Positions 6,497 through 36,300 of a stretch of 64,000 bases of DNA are shown piece after piece. A model generated the notes under the pieces. That model searched no databases and had not been told where the DNA came from. It saw nothing but the letters and a program-made list of their open reading frames with translations. The first letter of the stretch is position 1. Every line of letters begins with the position of its first letter. Source of the DNA: Tubulanus polymorphus (lineage: Eukaryota > Animalia > Nemertea); the NCBI RefSeq assembly GCF_964204645.1, contig NC_134033.1:13772655-13836654 (forward strand). Reading direction: 5' to 3'. Made by a program: the position numbers and the translations under genes.

Positions 6497-9400
6497 TTAG
6501 TGATCCAATTATCCTTAATGAAATCCTAATAAAATGAGGAATAGATATAGGTAAACTTCCCAACTTCTGCCCAGAGGATTTCAACGTGCATTGATCTGGC
6601 ATAATTAGATTGGCCAAGAGATCGAAGCCACGGTTCGAAACGGCAATTTGAAGTTGAACCTTGATTTCATATTTATATTTCTCTTTACAAAAAACAATTA
6701 GAAAGTTAAAGCAGTTCAGCCACTTGCATGTAGTCGTCTCTCTACGCCTTCCAACATGACTTCTCTTGAAATAGTTACTTACCGTAAAAACCGGCGTATA
6801 AGTCTACGCGGCGTATAAGTCGAGGTCGATTTTTAGACTTACATTTCATGATTTTAACATATATCTGGCTTATAAGTCGAGTCCCTTCTCTTAGAAGAAT
6901 AATTACTAGTATCATTATATTGAATAGTTTGTTTTGATAACGATGTGTGCCTTCACGCACGTCACCACGCGTCAGCCTGATTGCTAATACATAAATTGAA
7001 CTATAGAAAAAATGAAGACCGTGGGAACGGGACAGTATCCGATATCAATCTACAAAATCTTCTCTCTTTGATTTGAATGTAACTGAAGTGAATTCGTCTT
7101 AGGAACCGTCACGATTAATTAAAAACACCTACCTATACCCTACTCATAACCACGCCCAAGTTCGCGTTTATCATGCATTAACACTCACCGAAACACCGTA
7201 TGAAATCATTTGAAATTCCACTAACATTGCCGTTATCGTGTGTGGGTGTTCTTGATAAGCGGTACAACGAGTAAGCATCGTTCTATTTATGCTTCAAGGA
7301 ATTACGCATTACTATTTCCCGATGGGTTTTCCCGAACGAAAAAAGTTACTTGCTGGAAGAATAGTTCCGAAGACTATCTATCTGGTATTTCAGCAATTTA
7401 GATAATCGTCACTTACTGAAAGAATATTGTTATTTCGACAGTTCCGATGACTTTCTATCAATCTGGTATTTTAGCAATTTAGCTACCCGTTAAGCGACAA
7501 CGTTGACAGTACGAAATTTAATTTGCTGGGTCATTACAAAAAAACGTATGGAAACGTATGTTACGCTAGTTAACCAGGCACATAACTCATTTTAAGTCGT
7601 GACTATACTAATCGTAATCGGAATAAAGATATCACCCTTTGACATAAACAACCGCGACATTTTGTATATTCAGGCATCCTAAATGATATCGGATCTTAAG
7701 ATGTAAGTATCTAAAATATATGTTTCTATCTGTTATAATCGAAATGAAAAATAGATATTATGGTCATTAACGAGGAATATCAAAACTGATAACTCTCAGA
7801 AATGAAGATCATTCTGATGCAAAATCGAAGCACGTTTTTCAACGTTTGAACCTTTAGAAGAGAATAAAATCTTAATGCCCGTGCCAGCAGCTATAGTAGA
7901 GCTCAACGCGTGTTTGTCAAGGCTAAACTCACAACCCTATGGAACTGGGTCCCGGATCTTCTAAGTCCGACAGGAATCCACCTGCGGAAAGTTCCACCGA
8001 CAGGAATCCATCTCGTAAGCGGCTTCATTCGTCAACAGTGACGTGTTAGCTCGACACGACGTGGGCTCGTCTGCAGACGGAACGCAGCAATGTCATCATA
8101 TACAAAATCAATTCCCGCTCGCACTTGCACGAATACGCATATATTATTTTGCTCCGTATTATAATCTATATCACTTCGGCATATTTCATATCTACGTCGA
8201 TATTACTGTATATAATTATGTTAAACACCGCATTGCCGAACAGGGAAAAATACCTTCAAACTTCAAAATACAAAACACGAAAAACAAACTCAAGAGATAA
8301 AAGAGAACAGCAGCAATATGAAAAACAAAGTTCAAACCGGTAACTTAACAAGAAAAATTATAATTGAGAAGTAAATTAACAAAAGTATTAATTATACTTA
8401 CCTGGGTTGGTGTAGATACGCATAGTGACTGATGGCGGGTATGTCGGCTATGTATTTCTGCCCGCGCACGTTTGGGTTTTCGATCGTCGAATACGGTCGT
8501 CTGATCGCGCCGTCATTGCCATCAGGACTTTATAAGACATCCGGATCGGGCGGCCTGAAAATAAAGTAAGCCCGATTCCTTTTCGGGCGTTGATTGGTCG
8601 CCGGCGTCGCGGGGACGCGTCATCAGCGGGCTGATTTTGCGGCAAATATAACAATAGATCGTCAAGCGATGAGCGAATTACTCGAAAAAGTTCTTCTTCA
8701 AAAGCCCCATTTAGAGAAACAGTAAGAGGTAATGAATTAGCCAAGTCGCGTTACCTTTCGAATTCTTAAAACACTTACTCTGACCTGGGTCCTCCATGTT
8801 CGCTGAACGCAACAGAGTTGGTCGATTGCCCTGGGAAAGTTGTGTTTGAATGTTAAAGCTGTGCACAACGATAGTTTCATATTTTCAAGTACGTGCAGAT
8901 ATGCTTTCCATTATTTTTCCCGTTCAAGTGGGCCGCCTATTGCCGAAGCTCGAAGCTCGAATGATCTATATACTATTGTTGAAAAATATATGTATCCGTA
9001 TACGAAACGTAGCCAACGCCCTAGCGCAGTCACGTGGCCGATGAAGTGGTCAGTAACCATGGCACCGGATTTGATTGACGGCTACAAGTAGTTTTTCAAT
9101 TGAAGTTTTTTTTCGAGTAAAAAAAAAAATTTCGAAACGACCATGACCCTTCATATGTGTCAGAAACTGATATCGCAAAGCGTACAAGCGCGGCGAATAG
9201 TCTAAAACGCTGAACAATACCTTAACCGAAATATCGACAAGTTATCCCAATTGAGGGAGGCAAACTGGGAACGCAAAACATCCATTTGTAAAAACTCATC
9301 CTTTATATAGAATTTCGCCTCGGTTATTCACGCATATCTAATTGAACCTGTCGATAAACAAAAGTTACACCGACGTCAAGCATGCGCGGAGTGAAATGAT

Positions 9401-10196
9401 CTGTCAGACTGTTACACACACACTCGGGTATAATACACTAAAGGGGGGCTCAGATCGACCTTACGACGCGACTCAACTGGTCGGCGACTGGTTTTCCGGC
9501 GACTACCGCCGATCGTCGCACGATTTTCGTCGCCGATTCTAGTCGATCAGTTTTTCACGATCGGCGACTGAATCGCAGGAGTTGAACATGTTCTACTTCT
9601 ACGACGCGACGGAACCAGTCGCCGACTCGTCGTCGTCGATGTGCGTGTTTCTGCGATGAGTTGCCGACTCCACAACTAATTTCAGCCAATTACGGCGGTG
9701 TTGTACCGCTATGATAATAAATAACGAGTAATAATTACATAACGAGTAAGTTCAAAAAACGAATAGAGGTAAAAGTGCAGATCCGCACCTCTCCGCGTTC
9801 AATCAATTACGTTAAATATCATTGTTTCAGATTCAAAATGTCATCAGCAATCAGTCAGGAACACTTTCCAAAAACGGCTTATTCTGCCAATTTCGGCGTT
9901 TTCCGCCAATAACGGCAGAATCAGCCGTTTATGGATCACTCAGTTTTGAAACTTTTACAGTCGTTTATGGCTTAATCAGCCAGTTTCATGATTTCAATCA
10001 TTGGGTTCGAGTCACTGCAACAGGACCTTACCAAGCTGAGGGCAGGGGGCAGTCTCCCGCCTCGACCGAGAGATTTTGGAAAAGAGCCCTTTTTGCATCT
10101 ATGATTGTTATGTGCAATAAAAAGGCCACTTTTCAGGTTTATCTGCCCCCTCTCAAGAATCAATTCAAGGTACGGCCCTGAAAAAAGCTGAAATAT

Positions 10197-11315
10197 CTAC
10201 GGAATTTTGATCCACCACGGCATGAAATATTGTTCGTAACTAAATAGACGAGCGGCCCAAGTGCCGGGTGCCCTGGCGCTGCCGAAATAAGTCGTCGTGC
10301 CGTTGGCTAAAAACGCGCCCCAGAATCCAAACGATCCGATCGTTAGAATCGAGTGGTTTGATTTCGATAAGATCGCCAGATCGACAAGACGATCCGTGCC
10401 GGGACAAAACGCCGTGTTCGGCATCGAGCCGAATTTCTCGCGGCACCATTTCAAATCGTCACTGCATATCACGTATAAAACGTTATCGTATAATCTTTCC
10501 ATAATTGCCATCGCTTTATTGAAATAATCTATCGTCGGTTGCCGCATACCCAGTTTGTCATGATTATGTGCGTTCGTAATGTCCCCACGACGAACATGAA
10601 TGCCCACGTATGTCACTTTTGTACTATGTCTTTTTGTCCGATGTTTTCGTGTATAATTTGCCGTTGCATTCGCCAGGAAGGATTCGGCTGCGTCTGTAAC
10701 CGGCTTCCTGAACGTGAACTCTCGTCGCAGCTGATCGGACGCGTGCGGATGGAAATAGCGCCAATTCTGAAAAAATCCCCACAGCACAAAATTGCCTTTG
10801 ATCTTGACAGTTTTCATCAACTTCGGGTCGAAAAAGCAACAATTCTCATTGTAGCGATTTGAATTTTTCGTGACTCGGGATTGGTATTCACTGTCCGGGT
10901 ATTTTTCAGCACTTATGTCGAATATTTTCCGCAAACCGTTTCCTTCGTTGAGGTAGATGGGCACGTTACCCCTTGCTAACGCTACTCCAACAAGAGCGGC
11001 GTACTGAAACATATTATTGCCCAGCCTTCCCTGTGTAAAGACCGTCATGCTAGAATTAGCGGCGACGTTCTTATCGATTTTTTTCGGTGTAGGTTTAGGT
11101 GTTGTTCGTTTCGTCTGCGGACGCTGTTTATCAGTTATAATCTGAAGTTGTTGTTTATTGGTCATTGCTGTCGTTTGATACACAATATAGACAGTAGAAA
11201 TGACGAATAACATCATGCATAAAATAGCTAAGAAATGCCGCCTCGTAGGGTCCATCAATCCGATCAATGTACGGATAAACATCATTATTACTGAAATAAT
11301 GAAATAAACGACCAT
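10197..11315 (-). CDS. GT11 alpha-1,2-fucosyltransferase, type A copy 2
   Basis: 372-aa ORF nearly identical to 3033..4178, lacking one 27-bp stem repeat. Confidence 0.93.
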   Translation of the reverse strand: MVVYFIISVIMMFIRTLIGLMDPTRRHFLAILCMMLFVISTVYIVYQTTAMTNKQQLQIITDKQRPQTKRTTPKPTPKKIDKNVAANSSMTVFTQGRLGNNMFQYAALVGVALARGNVPIYLNEGNGLRKIFDISAEKYPDSEYQSRVTKNSNRYNENCCFFDPKLMKTVKIKGNFVLWGFFQNWRYFHPHASDQLRREFTFRKPVTDAAESFLANATANYTRKHRTKRHSTKVTYVGIHVRRGDITNAHNHDKLGMRQPTIDYFNKAMAIMERLYDNVLYVICSDDLKWCREKFGSMPNTAFCPGTDRLVDLAILSKSNHSILTIGSFGFWGAFLANGTTTYFGSARAPGTWAARLFSYEQYFMPWWIKIP

Positions 11316-29982: not shown

Positions 29983-31770
29983 CTATCCGTCCAGCGGTTG
30001 ACCTAAGTACACCATTGATACTTCTGTATTGCCGTAAACTGCTGATACTGAAGGGTAAAGATGAGTATCTGGTAATCCTCTAAATGCAACTCCTACAAAT
30101 AGAACATTTTTACGCAATTATATTCCAGTGTTTTCGATAAGAAATTAACAAGCCAGGTCCCTTAGAAAAGCAGGAGGGTTCCCCCTAGCCTATGTCACAG
30201 TCCCTGAAACAAAAGCTAGTTTGAAAAACCAGGCGGGTCCTTTACAAACAACAGACAGACCTGGGACCTGGCTGTTATTGAAAACACAGTATTTGAATCC
30301 ATAGCAGTCTTTTACAGCTCGGCCACTATCACTTGAACATAGCTGTCCACAAGGAATTTACCCGGGGCCAACTATCAGGCCTGATCACTATTGGCCCTAG
30401 CTGTCCACTACATGTAACTCACCTAAAAATTCGTAATTTTTTTCAAATGCAAGAGTATTGTCTTCACAGTCTAGTATAACCCGTATTCGTTCACCAACCT
30501 ACAATATGGATACATAAACCTTAAAATACTACATCAGGATCCAGCTCCACAGTTATGAGTTTAGAGTTAACTCCGAGTTAAAATTAGTTCATTTTCAATG
30601 AGTTAACTCTCGAGTCAAATCTTAAATCACAACTGTCGAACTGGGTTCTGGAGCATACTGGAGGAGTGATAGCTCACAATGTAGCACTCTCACTGCTGGA
30701 GGAGTGATGTCTCACAATGGAGCACTCCTCATTGCTGGAGGAGTGATATCTCACACTGCTGAAGGAGTGATATCTCACACTGCTGGAGGAGTGATATCTC
30801 ACAATGGAGCACTCCTCATTGCTGGAGGAGTGATATCTCACAATGGAGCACTCCTCATTGCTGGAGGAGTGATATCTCAGACTACTGGAGGAGTGATATC
30901 TCACAATGGAGCACACTCAGTGCTGGAGGAGTGATATCCCACAATGGAGCACACTCAGAGCTGGAGGAGTGATATCTCACAATGGAGCACACTCAGTGCT
31001 GGAGGAGTGATATCTCACACTGCTGGAGTGCTGGAGGAGTGATATCTCACACTGCTGGAGTGCTGGAAGAGTGATAGCTCACAATGGAGCACTCTCACTG
31101 CTGAAGGGGTGATATCATAGCACTCCATCTGGAGCACATTGCACTGGAGGAGTCGTTTCTCACATTGGAGGAGTACAGTACTGTCTCTTACCTGATATTT
31201 CGGAGCATTGTTTAATTGAGGGTAGTTGCCCTGACAATCTCCGTTATGTAATAAATTATTATCGACCAGATTCCAACCCCAACTCTGATCATCGCTGCCT
31301 AGTAACGCTACGTATCCGTGGCACTGATTCGGCGCTTTTTTCGTCGCGATGCCGATCACGGCGACCGTACCGAGCGGTCCTTCCCACCAAATTTCCCAAC
31401 AATGTCGGCCGTTTTTGAAACCGATTTTGCCGCGTGAGCCGTCCGTGCTTTGCGCGACCGGATTGCGATGGATCGTAAATCCGTTGTCTTTAATGTACAT
31501 ATTGCGCGAACAGTCGTTCGGGTTCCAGGCGTGGAAAAAGGATTTTAATTTCGCCTTGTAAGTGGGTACATTGCTGAGAATGTTCGATTTCAGGGCCACT
31601 TCGGCGAGTTTCCTGACGCAGTGAAAGCGCCAAACGTCGTTATTCTCGTCGTTCAGGATTCGATACCAGGACTTGCAGGTCAGCGCGCAGTTTCTCAGGT
31701 CCTCCAGCTCCAAATAGCTGAAAATTATCTCCAAAATTCCCGATGAGAATTTCATGACAGCAGAAGCCAT
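29983..31770 (-). CDS. FBXO45: F-box/SPRY domain protein 45 (FSN-1 orthologue), 3 exons
   Basis: Exons 31770-31192, 30498-30423, 30092-29983; F-box then SPRY: [66 protein letters not shown]. Confidence 0.97.
30655..31172. repeat. Minisatellite (CTGGAGGAGTGATATCTCACA core; 24/39-bp variants) in FBXO45 intron 1
   Basis: Direct tandem repetition. Confidence 0.9.
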
Positions 31771-32215
31771 GATGATTCAATTTCAATTCAATTCAATTGT
31801 TGACTTTATTTCATTGAATTCAATCAAATTTAGAATTTATTTACCAATATAGTTTTGTTTTGTACATCATAACGGTCTTTTAAGAAAACAATAAACAAAC
31901 TGACAGAAGATCACTTAGATTTATAATTAGTGGATAAATAGGTAGATTTAAGTCAAACTTATTGTTGAATGAAAATGATATAAAATTCTACCATGTCTTC
32001 TCCCGTGATATTAAAAACAGCTGAATTGATTTTAATTTTGATGGCTTTTCGAAGCCATAAACAATTCTAACAAATTATGATATTTCATCAGCCGCAAATG
32101 TAATTCAAATTCTCAAAAATGCTTGATAGGCGGCGACACCGGTGAAAAATGGCGAATTCGTGACTGGAAGATTTTTAGGTACGAACGCAGAAATTCTGGC
32201 GCTAATTTGACAGTA
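31771..32215. promoter_or_regulatory. Bidirectional promoter FBXO45 / MMGT1
   Basis: Divergent ATGs 445 bp apart; YY1-like AAAATGGCG at ~32146. Confidence 0.6.
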
Positions 32216-33718
32216 ATGGCATCGACTTTACAGAAACTTTGTGTTGTTTTCGGACTGTTGTCTTTATTGCACGCTGCCTACTCGGCTACTCAACGTAAGT
32301 TACGCTTTTAAATTGTAAAAAATGGCTAAAATATGTCGATAATTTTGGTATAGTTCGAACGAGGTGGCAGCACCTGACGGTCATTATTTTTTTTTTTACA
32401 GATCGCACGTACATACGTTTAACAGAACAAGAATTCACCCGTTTACCTATCGATGTAAGTTCAACGATTTTAAATTTATGAATTGTTGGCTGATTTGTCT
32501 TGAAAGAATACTTGTCAGCGATCGCCAACATATCATGACACGTGAATGAAGAAGGTTGGATGATATCGCCGCCAGCCTAGTCCGCTGCGCTGTTCCAGCT
32601 TTTTTTTAGCCACATCTATAACGTCCCCTTAAACTGATCAGATAAGATACATAGAACCTTCGTTTGATAACAAAATGTCACTTAGGATTTCTTTTTAGGC
32701 CTAGGGACCTTCAAATTTAGGGGGTTGGACCCCCTCTAAATCCTGATACATAGAACCTTCGGTTGATATCGTCTAGAATCAGAAATAAATGAATTACGTA
32801 GATTAGTTTATGTTTGACAAGCAGAAAAAGTCAGTAACCTGTCTGTTGTTTAGTTTCACGATCGGATAAGCTCGTCTGATTATCAAAACTTACCACCAAC
32901 GATTAGGTAACTAACTACTGTGGCAGTACCTACTCCATGAAAGGGCCTTAACAAGGTCCGTCAACTGTGTGTTGTATTTGAAGGATATTTCTGATGTAAT
33001 TTCGTTCAGATATTGGTGCAGTGTTTGTTTGGATTGATTATAACGTGTTACGGCGTTGTAAATGTCGCCGGAGACCTACGAGAAATCAGAGCTACTGAAG
33101 AATTAGAAAACAAGTAAGTCCCCCTATGACATCATTAAATCAGAAACAAGATATCGGAATATCTTTGCTGTTAGCGGTGCATCCAGGAATTGACTCGGTA
33201 GTGCCAATAAAGCAGGGGCCGGTTTCATTGGTAAGACGCGGGAGTCCGCTAGATACATTTTTACAAGTATCTCGATGTTTTTAGACTCAATGCTCTGGAA
33301 AGGTTGGTGCACAACATTTAGGGGATGTACCCTAGGGGCTGCACAATGTCTCGGTGACCCTCTCCCCCTAAATCCATCACTAGTTGTTTATTACTATTGA
33401 GGTTAGTGTTGTGAATGTCAGAGCCGACATGATTGGCTCAGAGAAACAATCTCTCCGATTCGACCCATGAGAACTAACAGTTCCAACATTCCTTATTTAT
33501 AGCAATCCTGAAAAAGTATTCCGATTTCGTCTATTTATTTGATTATTTTATTTAATATTTGCCATCTTATCTGAAAAAAGAAGGGCCGTCATTGATTATT
33601 GTATGGATTGTATATTAATTTTAGAACGTGGGAAACTATCGGGAATCGTACATCGTTTTATACGTTCAATCATCGCGGTAAAGTTTTATTCGGAAGAGAC
33701 AGCAGACGTGAGGCTTAA
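32216..33718 (+). CDS. MMGT1: ER membrane complex subunit 5 / membrane magnesium transporter 1, 4 exons
   Basis: Exons 32216-32294, 32402-32454, 33010-33113, 33625-33718 give MASTLQKLCVVFGLLSLLHAAYSATQHRTYIRLTEQEFTRLPIDILVQCLFG...TWETIGNRTSFYTFNHRGKVLFGRDSRREA*. Confidence 0.95.
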
Positions 33719-33859
33719 AGAGATTCATACTTCACCCGAGGTACGTTTAAAACCGATTTGAATCCCGAAAACAGTCAGAAATATTGACGTTTTGCGATTA
33801 TCAGGACGGCTGCTTTATCCGGCTTGTTAAATATTTGTTGTTAGATCGTCCAAACAATC

Positions 33860-34200
33860 AATCAGTTTTTCGTCTATGTCCGGACTATTTTCCAGATTCC
33901 CTACAACTCTTGATTCCTTAGAATTTCCTTATGGAAATTGCTTTTAAAGGTGCTTGAAACTCCTTTAATTTGAGCAAAATTCCAAAAACTCTCACTTCAA
34001 GAAATAGGCAATTAGAATAGGTTATTTCAGCCTAACATCAGTTTTCCGTCTATGTCTGGACTGTTTTCCAGGGTCCATACAACCTACAACTCTTGGTTCC
34101 TTAGAAACTTCTACGGAAAATGCTTTTTAAGGTGCTTGAAACTCCTTTGATTTGAAGACAATGCCCAAAACTCTCACTTTGAGAAATAGGCAATTAGAAA
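33860..34200. repeat. Two direct copies (~170 bp) of a dispersed repeat; third copy ~35415..35545
   Basis: Shared CTACAACTCTTG..CCTTAG..GGTGCTTGAAACTCCTTT..GGCAATTAG blocks. Confidence 0.7.
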
Positions 34201-34358
34201 TGTTTGCAGTTGTACAAATCTTTCAGTCGCCCGAATTCAGATAAAATCTAATATTCAAATGTCTGTTATATTTTCTAGGTGTTCAATAATTGGTTTATAC
34301 GTAATTTTTTTCCGCACGTTGTATCTAAAACTGTGTCGATCGATGTTGTAAAATAAAT

Positions 34359-35381
34359 ATGGCCGCCGTAAAGTTCGATGTCGGGCACCTGTCTACGGTC
34401 TTGTGCGTCGACGCCGCCGACAAAATGGCCGCCTCGGGCGACGAGGATTCGTCGTTGATTCTGTGGACGCCCGACGGCGTCGCGACCGGTAAAATAACGG
34501 CGGGCACGGGCGGAGTGAACGCCGTACGACTCGCGCGTTCTAAACCGGAGATTTACGCCGCGGCCGGCGACCAGATTTATAACTACGACTCGCGCAATTT
34601 AAAAACGCCGCTGTTCGTCTATTCGGTGAACGCCGACGAAGTGAACGATCTGCGTATAGGTGGCGCCAGCGCGGAGCAGTATTTATCGGCGGCGGACGAT
34701 TCGGGCGCGATTCGCGTCGTCGATTTGAAGAATCGGCGACTGTTCAAAACGCTGCGGAAACACGATAACATCTGCACGACGGCGGCGTTCCGACCGGACC
34801 GACCGACCGAGATCATCACCGGCGGAATGGACTGCAACGTCGTGCGCTGGGATTTTAAACGCGCGCGACCGCTGCGTCGATTCGATATGAACGAACTCGT
34901 CGATAAAACCGACGAATCGCGATTCGTGCTGAATCCGCCGTTAGTTCATTCGGTGTGTATATCGGCAGACGGCGCCGTTCTCGCCGCCGGATTGGACAAC
35001 GCGCAGATTAAACTGTTCGACACGTCGGGTAAAGGCGTGTTTTATAAGAAGTCGTTGAACGCGCATCGTCAGGGCGTCGCGTGCGTTCACTTCGCCGCAT
35101 TCGGATCGCACGTTCTCATCTCCGGCGCCAACGATTCGACGGTCGCTGTTTGGAAGAACGTCGCCGAGATTTTAACGCCGCCGAAGAAGAAGAAGGAATC
35201 GTTGGATGACGCCGCCGGTACAAGCGCGACGGACACCGGCGCCGCCGATAGCGCAGACGACGCGGTGAAGATTTTCGAACACGGGAGTAAAGTGAACGGT
35301 TTGTCGAGTTGGAAACAAAACGGAAATCAAATTCTAGTCGTTGATCAATCAAAACTAATCAGCGCGTATACTTTGAGTTAG
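34359..35381 (+). CDS. WDR53: WD repeat-containing protein 53 (single coding exon)
   Basis: 340-aa WD40 ORF: GHLSTVLC, AADDSGAIRVVDL, RKHDNIC, GMDC, NPPLVHSV, EHGSKVN; adjacency to FBXO45 supports the orthology call. Confidence 0.88.
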   Translation: MAAVKFDVGHLSTVLCVDAADKMAASGDEDSSLILWTPDGVATGKITAGTGGVNAVRLARSKPEIYAAAGDQIYNYDSRNLKTPLFVYSVNADEVNDLRIGGASAEQYLSAADDSGAIRVVDLKNRRLFKTLRKHDNICTTAAFRPDRPTEIITGGMDCNVVRWDFKRARPLRRFDMNELVDKTDESRFVLNPPLVHSVCISADGAVLAAGLDNAQIKLFDTSGKGVFYKKSLNAHRQGVACVHFAAFGSHVLISGANDSTVAVWKNVAEILTPPKKKKESLDDAAGTSATDTGAADSADDAVKIFEHGSKVNGLSSWKQNGNQILVVDQSKLISAYTLS

Positions 35382-36300
35382 ATGAATTTTATCCCCCCCC
35401 CTTATTTCTAACAGGCTCCTTTCTACTTCTTGATTCCTTAAGAAACTCCTACAAAACAGGATATGGTGCTTGAAACTCCTTTGATTTTAACAAGGCCTAG
35501 AACTCCTTTTAGACTGTTTCAATTTTGAGAAAGGCAATTAGTAATTTTTGTCTAGTCTTATAGTAAACTATCCCTCAATCGATACAGTTGGGACCTGAAT
35601 TTTTTACCCGATTAAGCAGTTACCAAATTAGAAACCAAGTTTAGAAATGTTAAGGGTAACAATTTGTAGGGATTCTGTTTTATTCCTCTCCCCTATTACC
35701 GGGTATTTCGAATCTAAATTCTGCATTCTGTTTTGTATAGTCAGTTGTCATCGCTTTAGTTTAATCCGTACATCTGCTCTGTTTAAATATTGCAGATGCA
35801 CTTCTCTTATGTTTATTCTACGATGTGTTGTGTTGATTTTGAAGATCGATGTTTAAAAATGTTCACATTACAAATCTATGTTGTACGAACCAACGCAGCC
35901 AGACGTGTCCGAAACAGTTCTTAGAGTACACAGAGGAACCTCGTTATAATAACGATTAATCAGTTATTACAAACTTAGAATTTTATACTATGTAGATAAA
36001 TGTTGATTCACCTGATGAAGCTATTATTTGTAATGAAAGCTTGTGCGTCGAGTAAACAAGTTAAAACCTATATAGTACTACTCTATATAGTATTACCTCT
36101 CACTAATAATGAACAAATGGTTTCCTGAGCCCTAGGGCCTATTTTATAGACTATCAATATCAACCTTAACAGGGAAATGTTGATAATTTCATGCTGGATA
36201 TAAAGAACTATCAGATATAACAAACATATTTTTCAGGTCCCCTGAAGTTCGTTGTAACGAGGTTCCGCTGTACAGTCCCCTCTCAGTTACTATGTACAAC

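Follow-up and report, generated by a model that had tools for sequence, protein, structure and literature searches.

Gene organization of the locus

We analysed a 64,000-nt stretch of the genome of the ribbon worm Tubulanus polymorphus (Nemertea; RefSeq assembly GCF_964204645.1, contig NC_134033.1, positions 13,772,655 to 13,836,654 of the forward strand), which we call the window and number from its first letter. On its plus strand MMGT1, the gene for EMC5, a small protein of the endoplasmic reticulum membrane, lies directly ahead of WDR53, and the two appear to form a single dicistronic transcription unit in which most of the sequence between the open reading frames (ORFs) would be removed as an intron (Table 1). 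MMGT1 comprises four collinear exons, which by tblastn, exon by exon, match residues 1-100 of MMGT1 from the ribbon worm Lineus longissimus, from Haliotis and from an RNA contig, L007, described below. The exons are individually too short for Pfam, and for that reason the PF10270 profile found no match in the worm's own genome; exon 3 was used instead as a protein query for copy number. The WDR53 ORF matches solely WD40/propeller families in Pfam. HMMER brought up many WDR53 orthologues, of which the best named matches are Lineus WDR53-like (5.6e-77), then WDR53 of Lingula, Glandiceps and a fish, and in a phylogenetic tree it is the sister of Lineus WDR53 with support of 88/92. Both MMGT1 and WDR53 are single copy in the T. 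polymorphus genome.

The first coding exon of FBXO45 is arranged head-to-head with MMGT1, the two start codons being 445 nt apart. The sequence between them is presumed to hold a shared bidirectional promoter along with the 5' untranslated regions (UTRs). No Rfam family was matched within 31700-36200.

The WDR53 ORF has a GC content of 0.57, a third-position GC content (GC3) of 0.69 and an observed-to-expected CpG ratio of 2.0; by comparison, the MMGT1 exons have a GC3 of 0.35-0.42 and the flanking sequence a GC content of about 36%. Orthologues lack the high GC3, with values of 0.55 in Lineus, 0.38 in L007 and 0.37 in L044, a second contig described below. Copies of a repeat of about 180 nt, at 33861-34206 and 35454-35550, flank the ORF on both sides in direct orientation. 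A retrogene origin for this intronless, GC-rich, repeat-flanked ORF was rejected because WDR53 is single copy and its coding sequence (CDS) is also one exon in Lineus, Lingula and Glandiceps.

Table 1. Features of the MMGT1-WDR53 region, in window positions; slashes in motifs mark splice junctions.
Feature	Position	Strand	Basis and remarks
FBXO45 first coding exon (F-box and start of SPRY)	31192..31770	-	Pfam F-box-like 4e-11, SPRY; exon end ..APKYQ, then GTAAGA (minus strand)
Interval between FBXO45 and MMGT1 start codons	31771..32215	.	AT-rich, 26-34% GC (sequence, composition)
MMGT1/EMC5 exon 1	32216..32294	+	ATG and 26 codons, phase 1, donor AAC/GTAAGT; tblastn, residues 1-28 (L007, Lineus, Haliotis MMGT1)
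MMGT1 exon 2 (HRTYIRLTEQEFTRLPID)	32402..32454	+	tblastn, 78-83% identity; acceptor ..ttacAG, donor GAT/GTAAGT
MMGT1 exon 3	33010..33113	+	tblastn; single copy in genome; contains ATG 33062
MMGT1 last exon	33625..33740	+	after tttAG; reads ..TWETIGNRTSFYTFNHRGKVLFGRDSRREA; TAA 33716-33718; 22-nt spacer; 5' splice site GAG/GTACGT
Predicted inter-ORF intron, 538 nt	33741..34278	+	splice motifs; acceptor ttttctAG/G, AG at 34277-34278
Spacer on WDR53 exon, 80 nt	34279..34358	+	minute upstream ORF ATG TTG TAA at 34343-34351 (weak context); AATAAA 34352-34357
WDR53 ORF, 340 aa, one coding exon	34359..35381	+	Pfam WD40; named orthologues; single copy
Third copy, partial, of dispersed ~180-nt repeat, just past WDR53 stop	35454..35550	+	repeat families D2, D3, D6

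The interval between the two reading frames

An initial annotation of the window had proposed that MMGT1 and WDR53 share a transcript, joined by an intron that runs from just past the MMGT1 stop codon to just before the WDR53 start codon. On rereading window 32400-36000, the coordinates it gave for the stop, donor, acceptor, upstream ORF (uORF), AATAAA and WDR53 ATG all proved correct. Among the 3685 GTs on the plus strand of the window, the donor, GAG/GTACGT, scores within the top 0.3%, a density of about 0.00017 per nt, and the probability of an equally good donor arising by chance within 25 nt past the MMGT1 stop is about 0.004. Use of this donor with the acceptor at 34277-34278 would leave a predicted spliced spacer of 102 nt between the ORFs. 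No AG occurs in 34279-34371; the AG-free stretch of 95 nt ranks 31 of 3332 gaps and is unremarkable.

As had been described, the interval consists mostly of repeat sequence, namely two copies of the ~180-nt repeat in tandem at 33861-34206, or 346 nt of the 538. It belongs to a dispersed family, for which a first look over the genome gave at least 738 candidates, on many contigs and about 80-88% identical, and it looks like a short interspersed nuclear element or a miniature inverted-repeat transposable element. The two genes stand in tandem on the same strand, with an interval that is filled by repeats and bounded by a strong donor and an acceptor, which leaves no evident room or signal for separate transcription.

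Neither AATAAA nor ATTAAA occurs within 33719-34278. The lack of a polyadenylation signal, which the initial annotation had used as an argument for joint transcription, is thus real, and its significance falls away: AATAAA has a density of about 1.06 per kb per strand, the probability of absence over 560 nt is about 0.55, and WDR53 itself is without AATAAA for 1.3 kb past its own stop. In both nemertean genomes, that of the window and that of Lineus, the sole AATAAA between the ORFs is no more than 26 nt away from the start codon of WDR53; in Lineus it lies at 9975, 26 nt before the ATG and 20 nt before the acceptor. This position offers a weak parallel to the suggested switch, by alternative polyadenylation, between an MMGT1-only and a dicistronic mRNA.

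A matching layout in Lineus longissimus

At the Lineus locus (L006), a four-exon MMgT gene (7466-9323, plus strand) lies directly ahead of a single-exon WDR53 (10001-10981, plus strand). The MMGT1 TGA is followed after 17 nt by a donor, ACT/GTAAGT, then by an interval of tandem repeats and finally by an acceptor, ttccAG, 6 nt before the WDR53 ATG. Because the hypothesis had been built on the window alone, this layout constitutes an independent test, which it passed. The content of the interval is not conserved. Both the last MMGT1 intron of Lineus (L006:8560-9160) and its inter-ORF interval (9345-9680) are occupied by long tandem arrays, whose units measure about 120 nt and about 30-60 nt; these have no relation to the dispersed ~180-nt repeat of the window.

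The annotated Lineus proteins point in the same direction. XP_064639351.1, 'WDR53-like isoform X1', and XP_064639352.1, 'EMC5-like isoform X2', have consecutive accessions and a single isoform numbering, which under the convention of NCBI denotes one annotated gene with two transcript variants. The gene table for the locus gives two CDSs.

Dicistronic RNA contigs and fused flatworm models

Evidence for joint transcripts in relatives comes from short-read contigs together with synteny. The second-best match to WDR53 is L007, a 1476-nt Logan contig of SRR25726911, a metatranscriptome of Laurencia pacifica according to a preprint. In L007, a complete MMGT1 CDS without introns (91-411; PF10270 3e-11), which shares 78% identity with its Lineus counterpart, is separated by 29 nt from an equally complete WDR53 CDS (441-1373). 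The contig thus documents directly, in a nemertean-like animal, a mature RNA that is dicistronic for MMGT1 and WDR53. When JGI contigs were scanned with an MMGT1 alignment, 40 loci were obtained, of which one alone, L044, also encodes WDR53, with 5 nt separating the MMGT1 stop from the WDR53 ATG. The WDR53 of L044 falls in a clade with Macrostomum and monogenean WDR53 (support 100/100).

Two monogenean 'WDR53' gene models, from Cichlidogyrus casuarinus (P0048, KAL3312202.1) and Protopolystoma xenopodis (P0097, VEL43069.1), start with the C-terminal half of MMGT1. This part corresponds to residues ~41-100 and occupies the first ~55-65 residues of the model, with E values of 7e-12 in Cichlidogyrus and 2e-22 in Protopolystoma. 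Judged from the protein models, the chimeras could be either an annotation artefact of a dicistron or a real fusion. A search with the MMGT1 part of P0097 for further fused MMGT1-WDR53 models found itself alone, and a scan of about 200 fetched proteins found no fusions beyond P0048 and P0097/P0192.

These compact arrangements bear on the idea that MMGT1 and WDR53 are two independent genes, with a WDR53 promoter inside 33741-34358, perhaps derived from the repeat copies, MMGT1 ending at a non-canonical polyadenylation site and the adjacency reflecting conserved synteny. The 640-nt gap of the window is long enough for a promoter, the missing AATAAA carries no information, the two genes are sharply different in codon composition, and the Lineus locus table lists two CDSs. 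However, the gaps of 29 nt in L007, an RNA, and 5 nt in L044 leave no space for a promoter or terminator. Nor does this idea fit the conserved post-stop donor, the single X1/X2 numbering of the Lineus proteins, or an interval made of a dispersed repeat in one worm and of an unrelated tandem repeat in the other. We regard independent genes as distinctly improbable.

Distribution of the pairing

The initial annotation had pointed to MMGT1-WDR53 adjacency in other invertebrates as a test. Beyond the window, the pairing is conserved in Lineus, L007, L044 and the two monogenean fused models; it is absent around WDR53 of Lingula and Glandiceps and downstream of MMGT1 in Haliotis. It is likewise absent in mollusc-like transcripts of MMGT1, whose 3' UTRs are long, and in 36 other MMGT1 contigs, and no MMGT1 was found near WDR53 in L001-L005, L008 and L009. 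Its absence from Lingula, Glandiceps, Haliotis and these 36 contigs shows that the pairing is a specific trait rather than a general artefact.

In Glandiceps (L012), WDR53 adjoins a multicopper oxidase gene, followed by a Mito_carr gene; MMGT1 of Haliotis (L013) is also followed by a Mito_carr gene. These neighbours may be part of an old microsynteny block.

Probable origin of the predicted inter-ORF intron

Of eight WDR53 loci from several phyla, seven show a motif resembling a splice acceptor 1-21 nt ahead of the start codon, namely those of Lineus, L007, L044, Glandiceps, L001 and L009 and, visibly, of Lingula; about 0.1 such motifs would be expected per 30 nt. The acceptor of the window sits 80 nt before the ATG. 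Since the motif spans bilaterian loci, WDR53 has long had a 5'-UTR intron that ends near the start codon. This makes it probable that the inter-ORF intron is the ancestral 5'-UTR intron of WDR53, with the 3' end of MMGT1 acting as the first exon of WDR53. The donor lies 22 nt past the MMGT1 stop in the window and 17 nt in Lineus. A splice junction less than 50-55 nt past a stop codon escapes nonsense-mediated decay (NMD), and the stop-to-junction distance in both worms fits this rule. The head-to-head position of FBXO45 and MMGT1 fits a history in which MMGT1 was interposed between the WDR53 exon and a bidirectional promoter serving FBXO45 and WDR53.

An old acceptor could also serve a different transcript. 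The promoter may be shared and the mRNAs separate, such that an upstream 5' exon, either MMGT1 exon 1 or a non-coding leader, is spliced to the acceptor at 34278 and the MMGT1 coding exons are skipped; the dicistronic form would then be minor, or would serve for MMGT1 alone. Animals without the pairing (Lingula, Glandiceps, L001 and L009) have the acceptor 1-21 nt ahead of the WDR53 start codon, which speaks for such alternative splicing. So does its persistence, unspliced, in the L007 and L044 RNAs, where something else may use it, as does the annotation of the two Lineus products as different isoforms. Joined by hand to 34279, the phase 1 donor of exon 1 would yield a uORF that stops after 3 codons, which also suits this arrangement. 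What alternative splicing leaves unexplained is the strong donor 17-22 nt past the MMGT1 stop in both nemertean genomes and the ATG-free MMGT1 ORFs of L007 and L044, and no isoform of this kind turned up. We consider it unlikely; it is the most serious rival to a dicistronic mRNA and can coexist with one.

The same acceptor raises the question of a spliced leader (SL). Flatworms are a phylum with SL trans-splicing and operons. In an SL trans-spliced operon, a leader would be added at 34279, as the initial annotation had considered, to give a monocistronic WDR53 mRNA, and the RNA contigs of relatives would be precursors. The locus resembles the SL operons of flatworms, nematodes and tunicates in its tandem same-strand genes, very short spacing and a 3' splice site that closely precedes the second start codon. 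All four linked loci have an acceptor ahead of the WDR53 ATG, very little sequence separates the cistrons of L007 and L044, and L044 comes from flatworms. Unlike in SL operons, a good cis donor lies directly past the upstream stop, and the upstream ORF is depleted of ATGs in relatives, which fits translation of a dicistronic RNA and would be pointless if the operon were resolved. The same acceptor occurs in taxa without the pairing, which fits an ordinary 5'-UTR intron, and an MMGT1 polyadenylation signal ahead of the acceptor was not found among AATAAA and ATTAAA motifs in 33719-34278. A full-text literature search for SL trans-splicing in nemerteans brought up a single paper, on chaetognaths, and no spliced leader is known or was observed at this locus. 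An SL operon thus appears highly unlikely.

Upstream of the WDR53-like ORF of L009 (Logan SRR31167957), positions 1-420 hold about three tandem units of ~100 nt, each ending ..ttctgtttcag/ATGTGGTATGG.., which resemble duplicated alternative first coding segments.

Translation of WDR53

In a dicistronic mRNA, ribosomes would have to reach WDR53 past the MMGT1 ORF. L007 has no ATG in nt 25-441 except the two start codons, and L044 has none in the 322 nt preceding the WDR53 start. By comparison, 30 control MMGT1 CDSs contain a mean of 3.8 internal ATGs; zero was seen in 0/29 of the full-length ones, and a 195-nt partial CDS, L050, has none. For L007 and L044, respectively, the absence of internal ATGs had P = 0.02 and 0.18 in synonymous-codon shuffles and P = 0.004 each in mononucleotide shuffles. 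In the window, two ATGs occur between the ORF starts, each in a weak context. The one at 33062, which is out of frame in exon 3 and is the sole internal ATG of the MMGT1 CDS, opens an ORF of 14 codons, and the one at 34343 opens an ORF of 2 codons. Two ATGs also lie between the ORF starts in Lineus.

Because the MMGT1 ORFs of the two bicistronic RNA contigs lack internal ATGs, leaky scanning is favoured over reinitiation, one of the routes that the initial annotation had proposed for WDR53. Leaky scanning with some reinitiation as the mode of WDR53 translation is, on sequence features, an evenly poised call.

In the reading that we favour, MMGT1 and WDR53 would form one transcription unit, presumably driven from the promoter region that it would have in common with the head-to-head FBXO45, and 33741-34278 would be spliced out as an intron. 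This intron would be the ancient 5'-UTR intron of WDR53, with its donor now located on the 3' end of MMGT1. The predicted mature dicistronic mRNA would contain the MMGT1 ORF (109 codons), a spacer of ~102 nt and the WDR53 ORF; ribosomes would scan past the MMGT1 AUG and the weak AUGs at 33062 and 34343 to reach WDR53, and reinitiation after the tiny ORFs may add to its translation. It seems likely that this worm makes a spliced dicistronic mRNA, and the reading as a whole seems a probable one. The core proposal of the initial annotation, one unit with an intron from just past the MMGT1 stop to just before the WDR53 ATG, is strongly supported by the comparative evidence (the Lineus layout, L007 and L044, the monogenean models and the X1/X2 naming). 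Its detail of reinitiation is the less favoured mode of translation, and its argument from missing AATAAA motifs is not significant.

Several observations weigh against this reading. The MMGT1 AUG context is strong in the window, Lineus and L007, with a purine at -3 and G at +4, so that a suboptimal start of the first ORF was not found, and extensive leaky scanning is not favoured. The window and Lineus retain one or two internal ATGs, and the window also has a uORF. The AATAAA abutting the WDR53 ATG would, if efficient, cut the dicistronic RNA. The codon composition of WDR53 is far from that of MMGT1 (GC3 of 0.69 vs about 0.38). Lastly, the acceptor motif is kept inside the L007 and L044 RNA contigs, and another isoform may use it.

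Relation to known systems

Dicistronic animal mRNAs are already known as a kind. Drosophila stoned (stnA/stnB) and Snapin are dicistronic and use leaky scanning, and an AUG-scarce upstream ORF is a known signature, seen also in green algae (PMC11892635). Like stoned and Snapin, the present locus would place two unrelated conserved proteins on one mRNA, with an AUG-poor upstream ORF and a downstream ORF reached, as proposed here, by scanning. Unlike them, it concerns another gene pair, occurs in Nemertea and Platyhelminthes, has a strong upstream AUG context and carries a predicted inter-cistron intron in the two nemertean genomes. With the bicistronic loci of green algae (PMC11892635, PNAS 2025) it shares deep-time pairing of ORFs, short spacers (5-102 nt here) and, most clearly in L007 and L044, few AUGs before the second ORF. 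In contrast, the first ORF of the algal loci starts in a weak Kozak-like context, and the algal cases were established from long reads, ribosome profiling (Ribo-seq) and reporters, as against short-read contigs and synteny here.

We found no paper naming both WDR53 and MMGT1, nothing relevant for bicistronic together with WDR53, and no paper on an FBXO45/WDR53 bidirectional promoter. The MMGT1-WDR53 pairing itself was thus not found in the literature, and what it adds to the known kind is an inter-cistronic intron that probably arose from a 5'-UTR intron, conservation in Nemertea and Platyhelminthes, and an account of fused helminth gene models.

In human, FBXO45 and WDR53 are adjacent at 3q29 and head-to-head, and MMGT1 is on the X chromosome. 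The worm locus would resemble the human one in that FBXO45 is head-to-head with a unit ending in WDR53 and that the WDR53 protein is encoded in one exon after a 5'-UTR intron. Unlike in human, the worm has MMGT1 interposed, past the presumed shared promoter and ahead of the WDR53 exon.

Stable two-protein animal mRNAs are still counted singly, and MMGT1-WDR53 would join two conserved, single-copy genes of housekeeping type in a pairing that appears to have been kept across the deepest split among ribbon worms and in flatworms. It would also offer a concrete route of origin, in which the old 5'-UTR intron of the downstream gene turned inter-cistronic, at so short a distance from the upstream stop that NMD would be avoided. 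The pairing would provide a testable rare-genomic-change character for spiralian phylogeny, and it hints at a functional link for WDR53, a protein whose role is poorly known. More tentatively, and with doubt prevailing, we speculate that the dicistron goes back more than 500 million years as a rare genomic change common to ribbon worms and flatworms and of synapomorphy grade for Nemertea plus Platyhelminthes ('Parenchymia'): MMGT1 would have entered the WDR53 leader and taken over the donor of its 5'-UTR intron, and WDR53 would since have been made by leaky scanning through the AUG-poor EMC5 ORF. If this is true, the dosage of WDR53, and perhaps its function, is tied to the endoplasmic reticulum membrane complex. 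For helminth databases, a dicistron would account for mis-fused 'WDR53' models.

Beside the end of FBXO45 exon 1, apparently in the first intron of FBXO45, lies a minisatellite at about 30650-31060 with long ORFs on both strands (..VRYHSSSS..).

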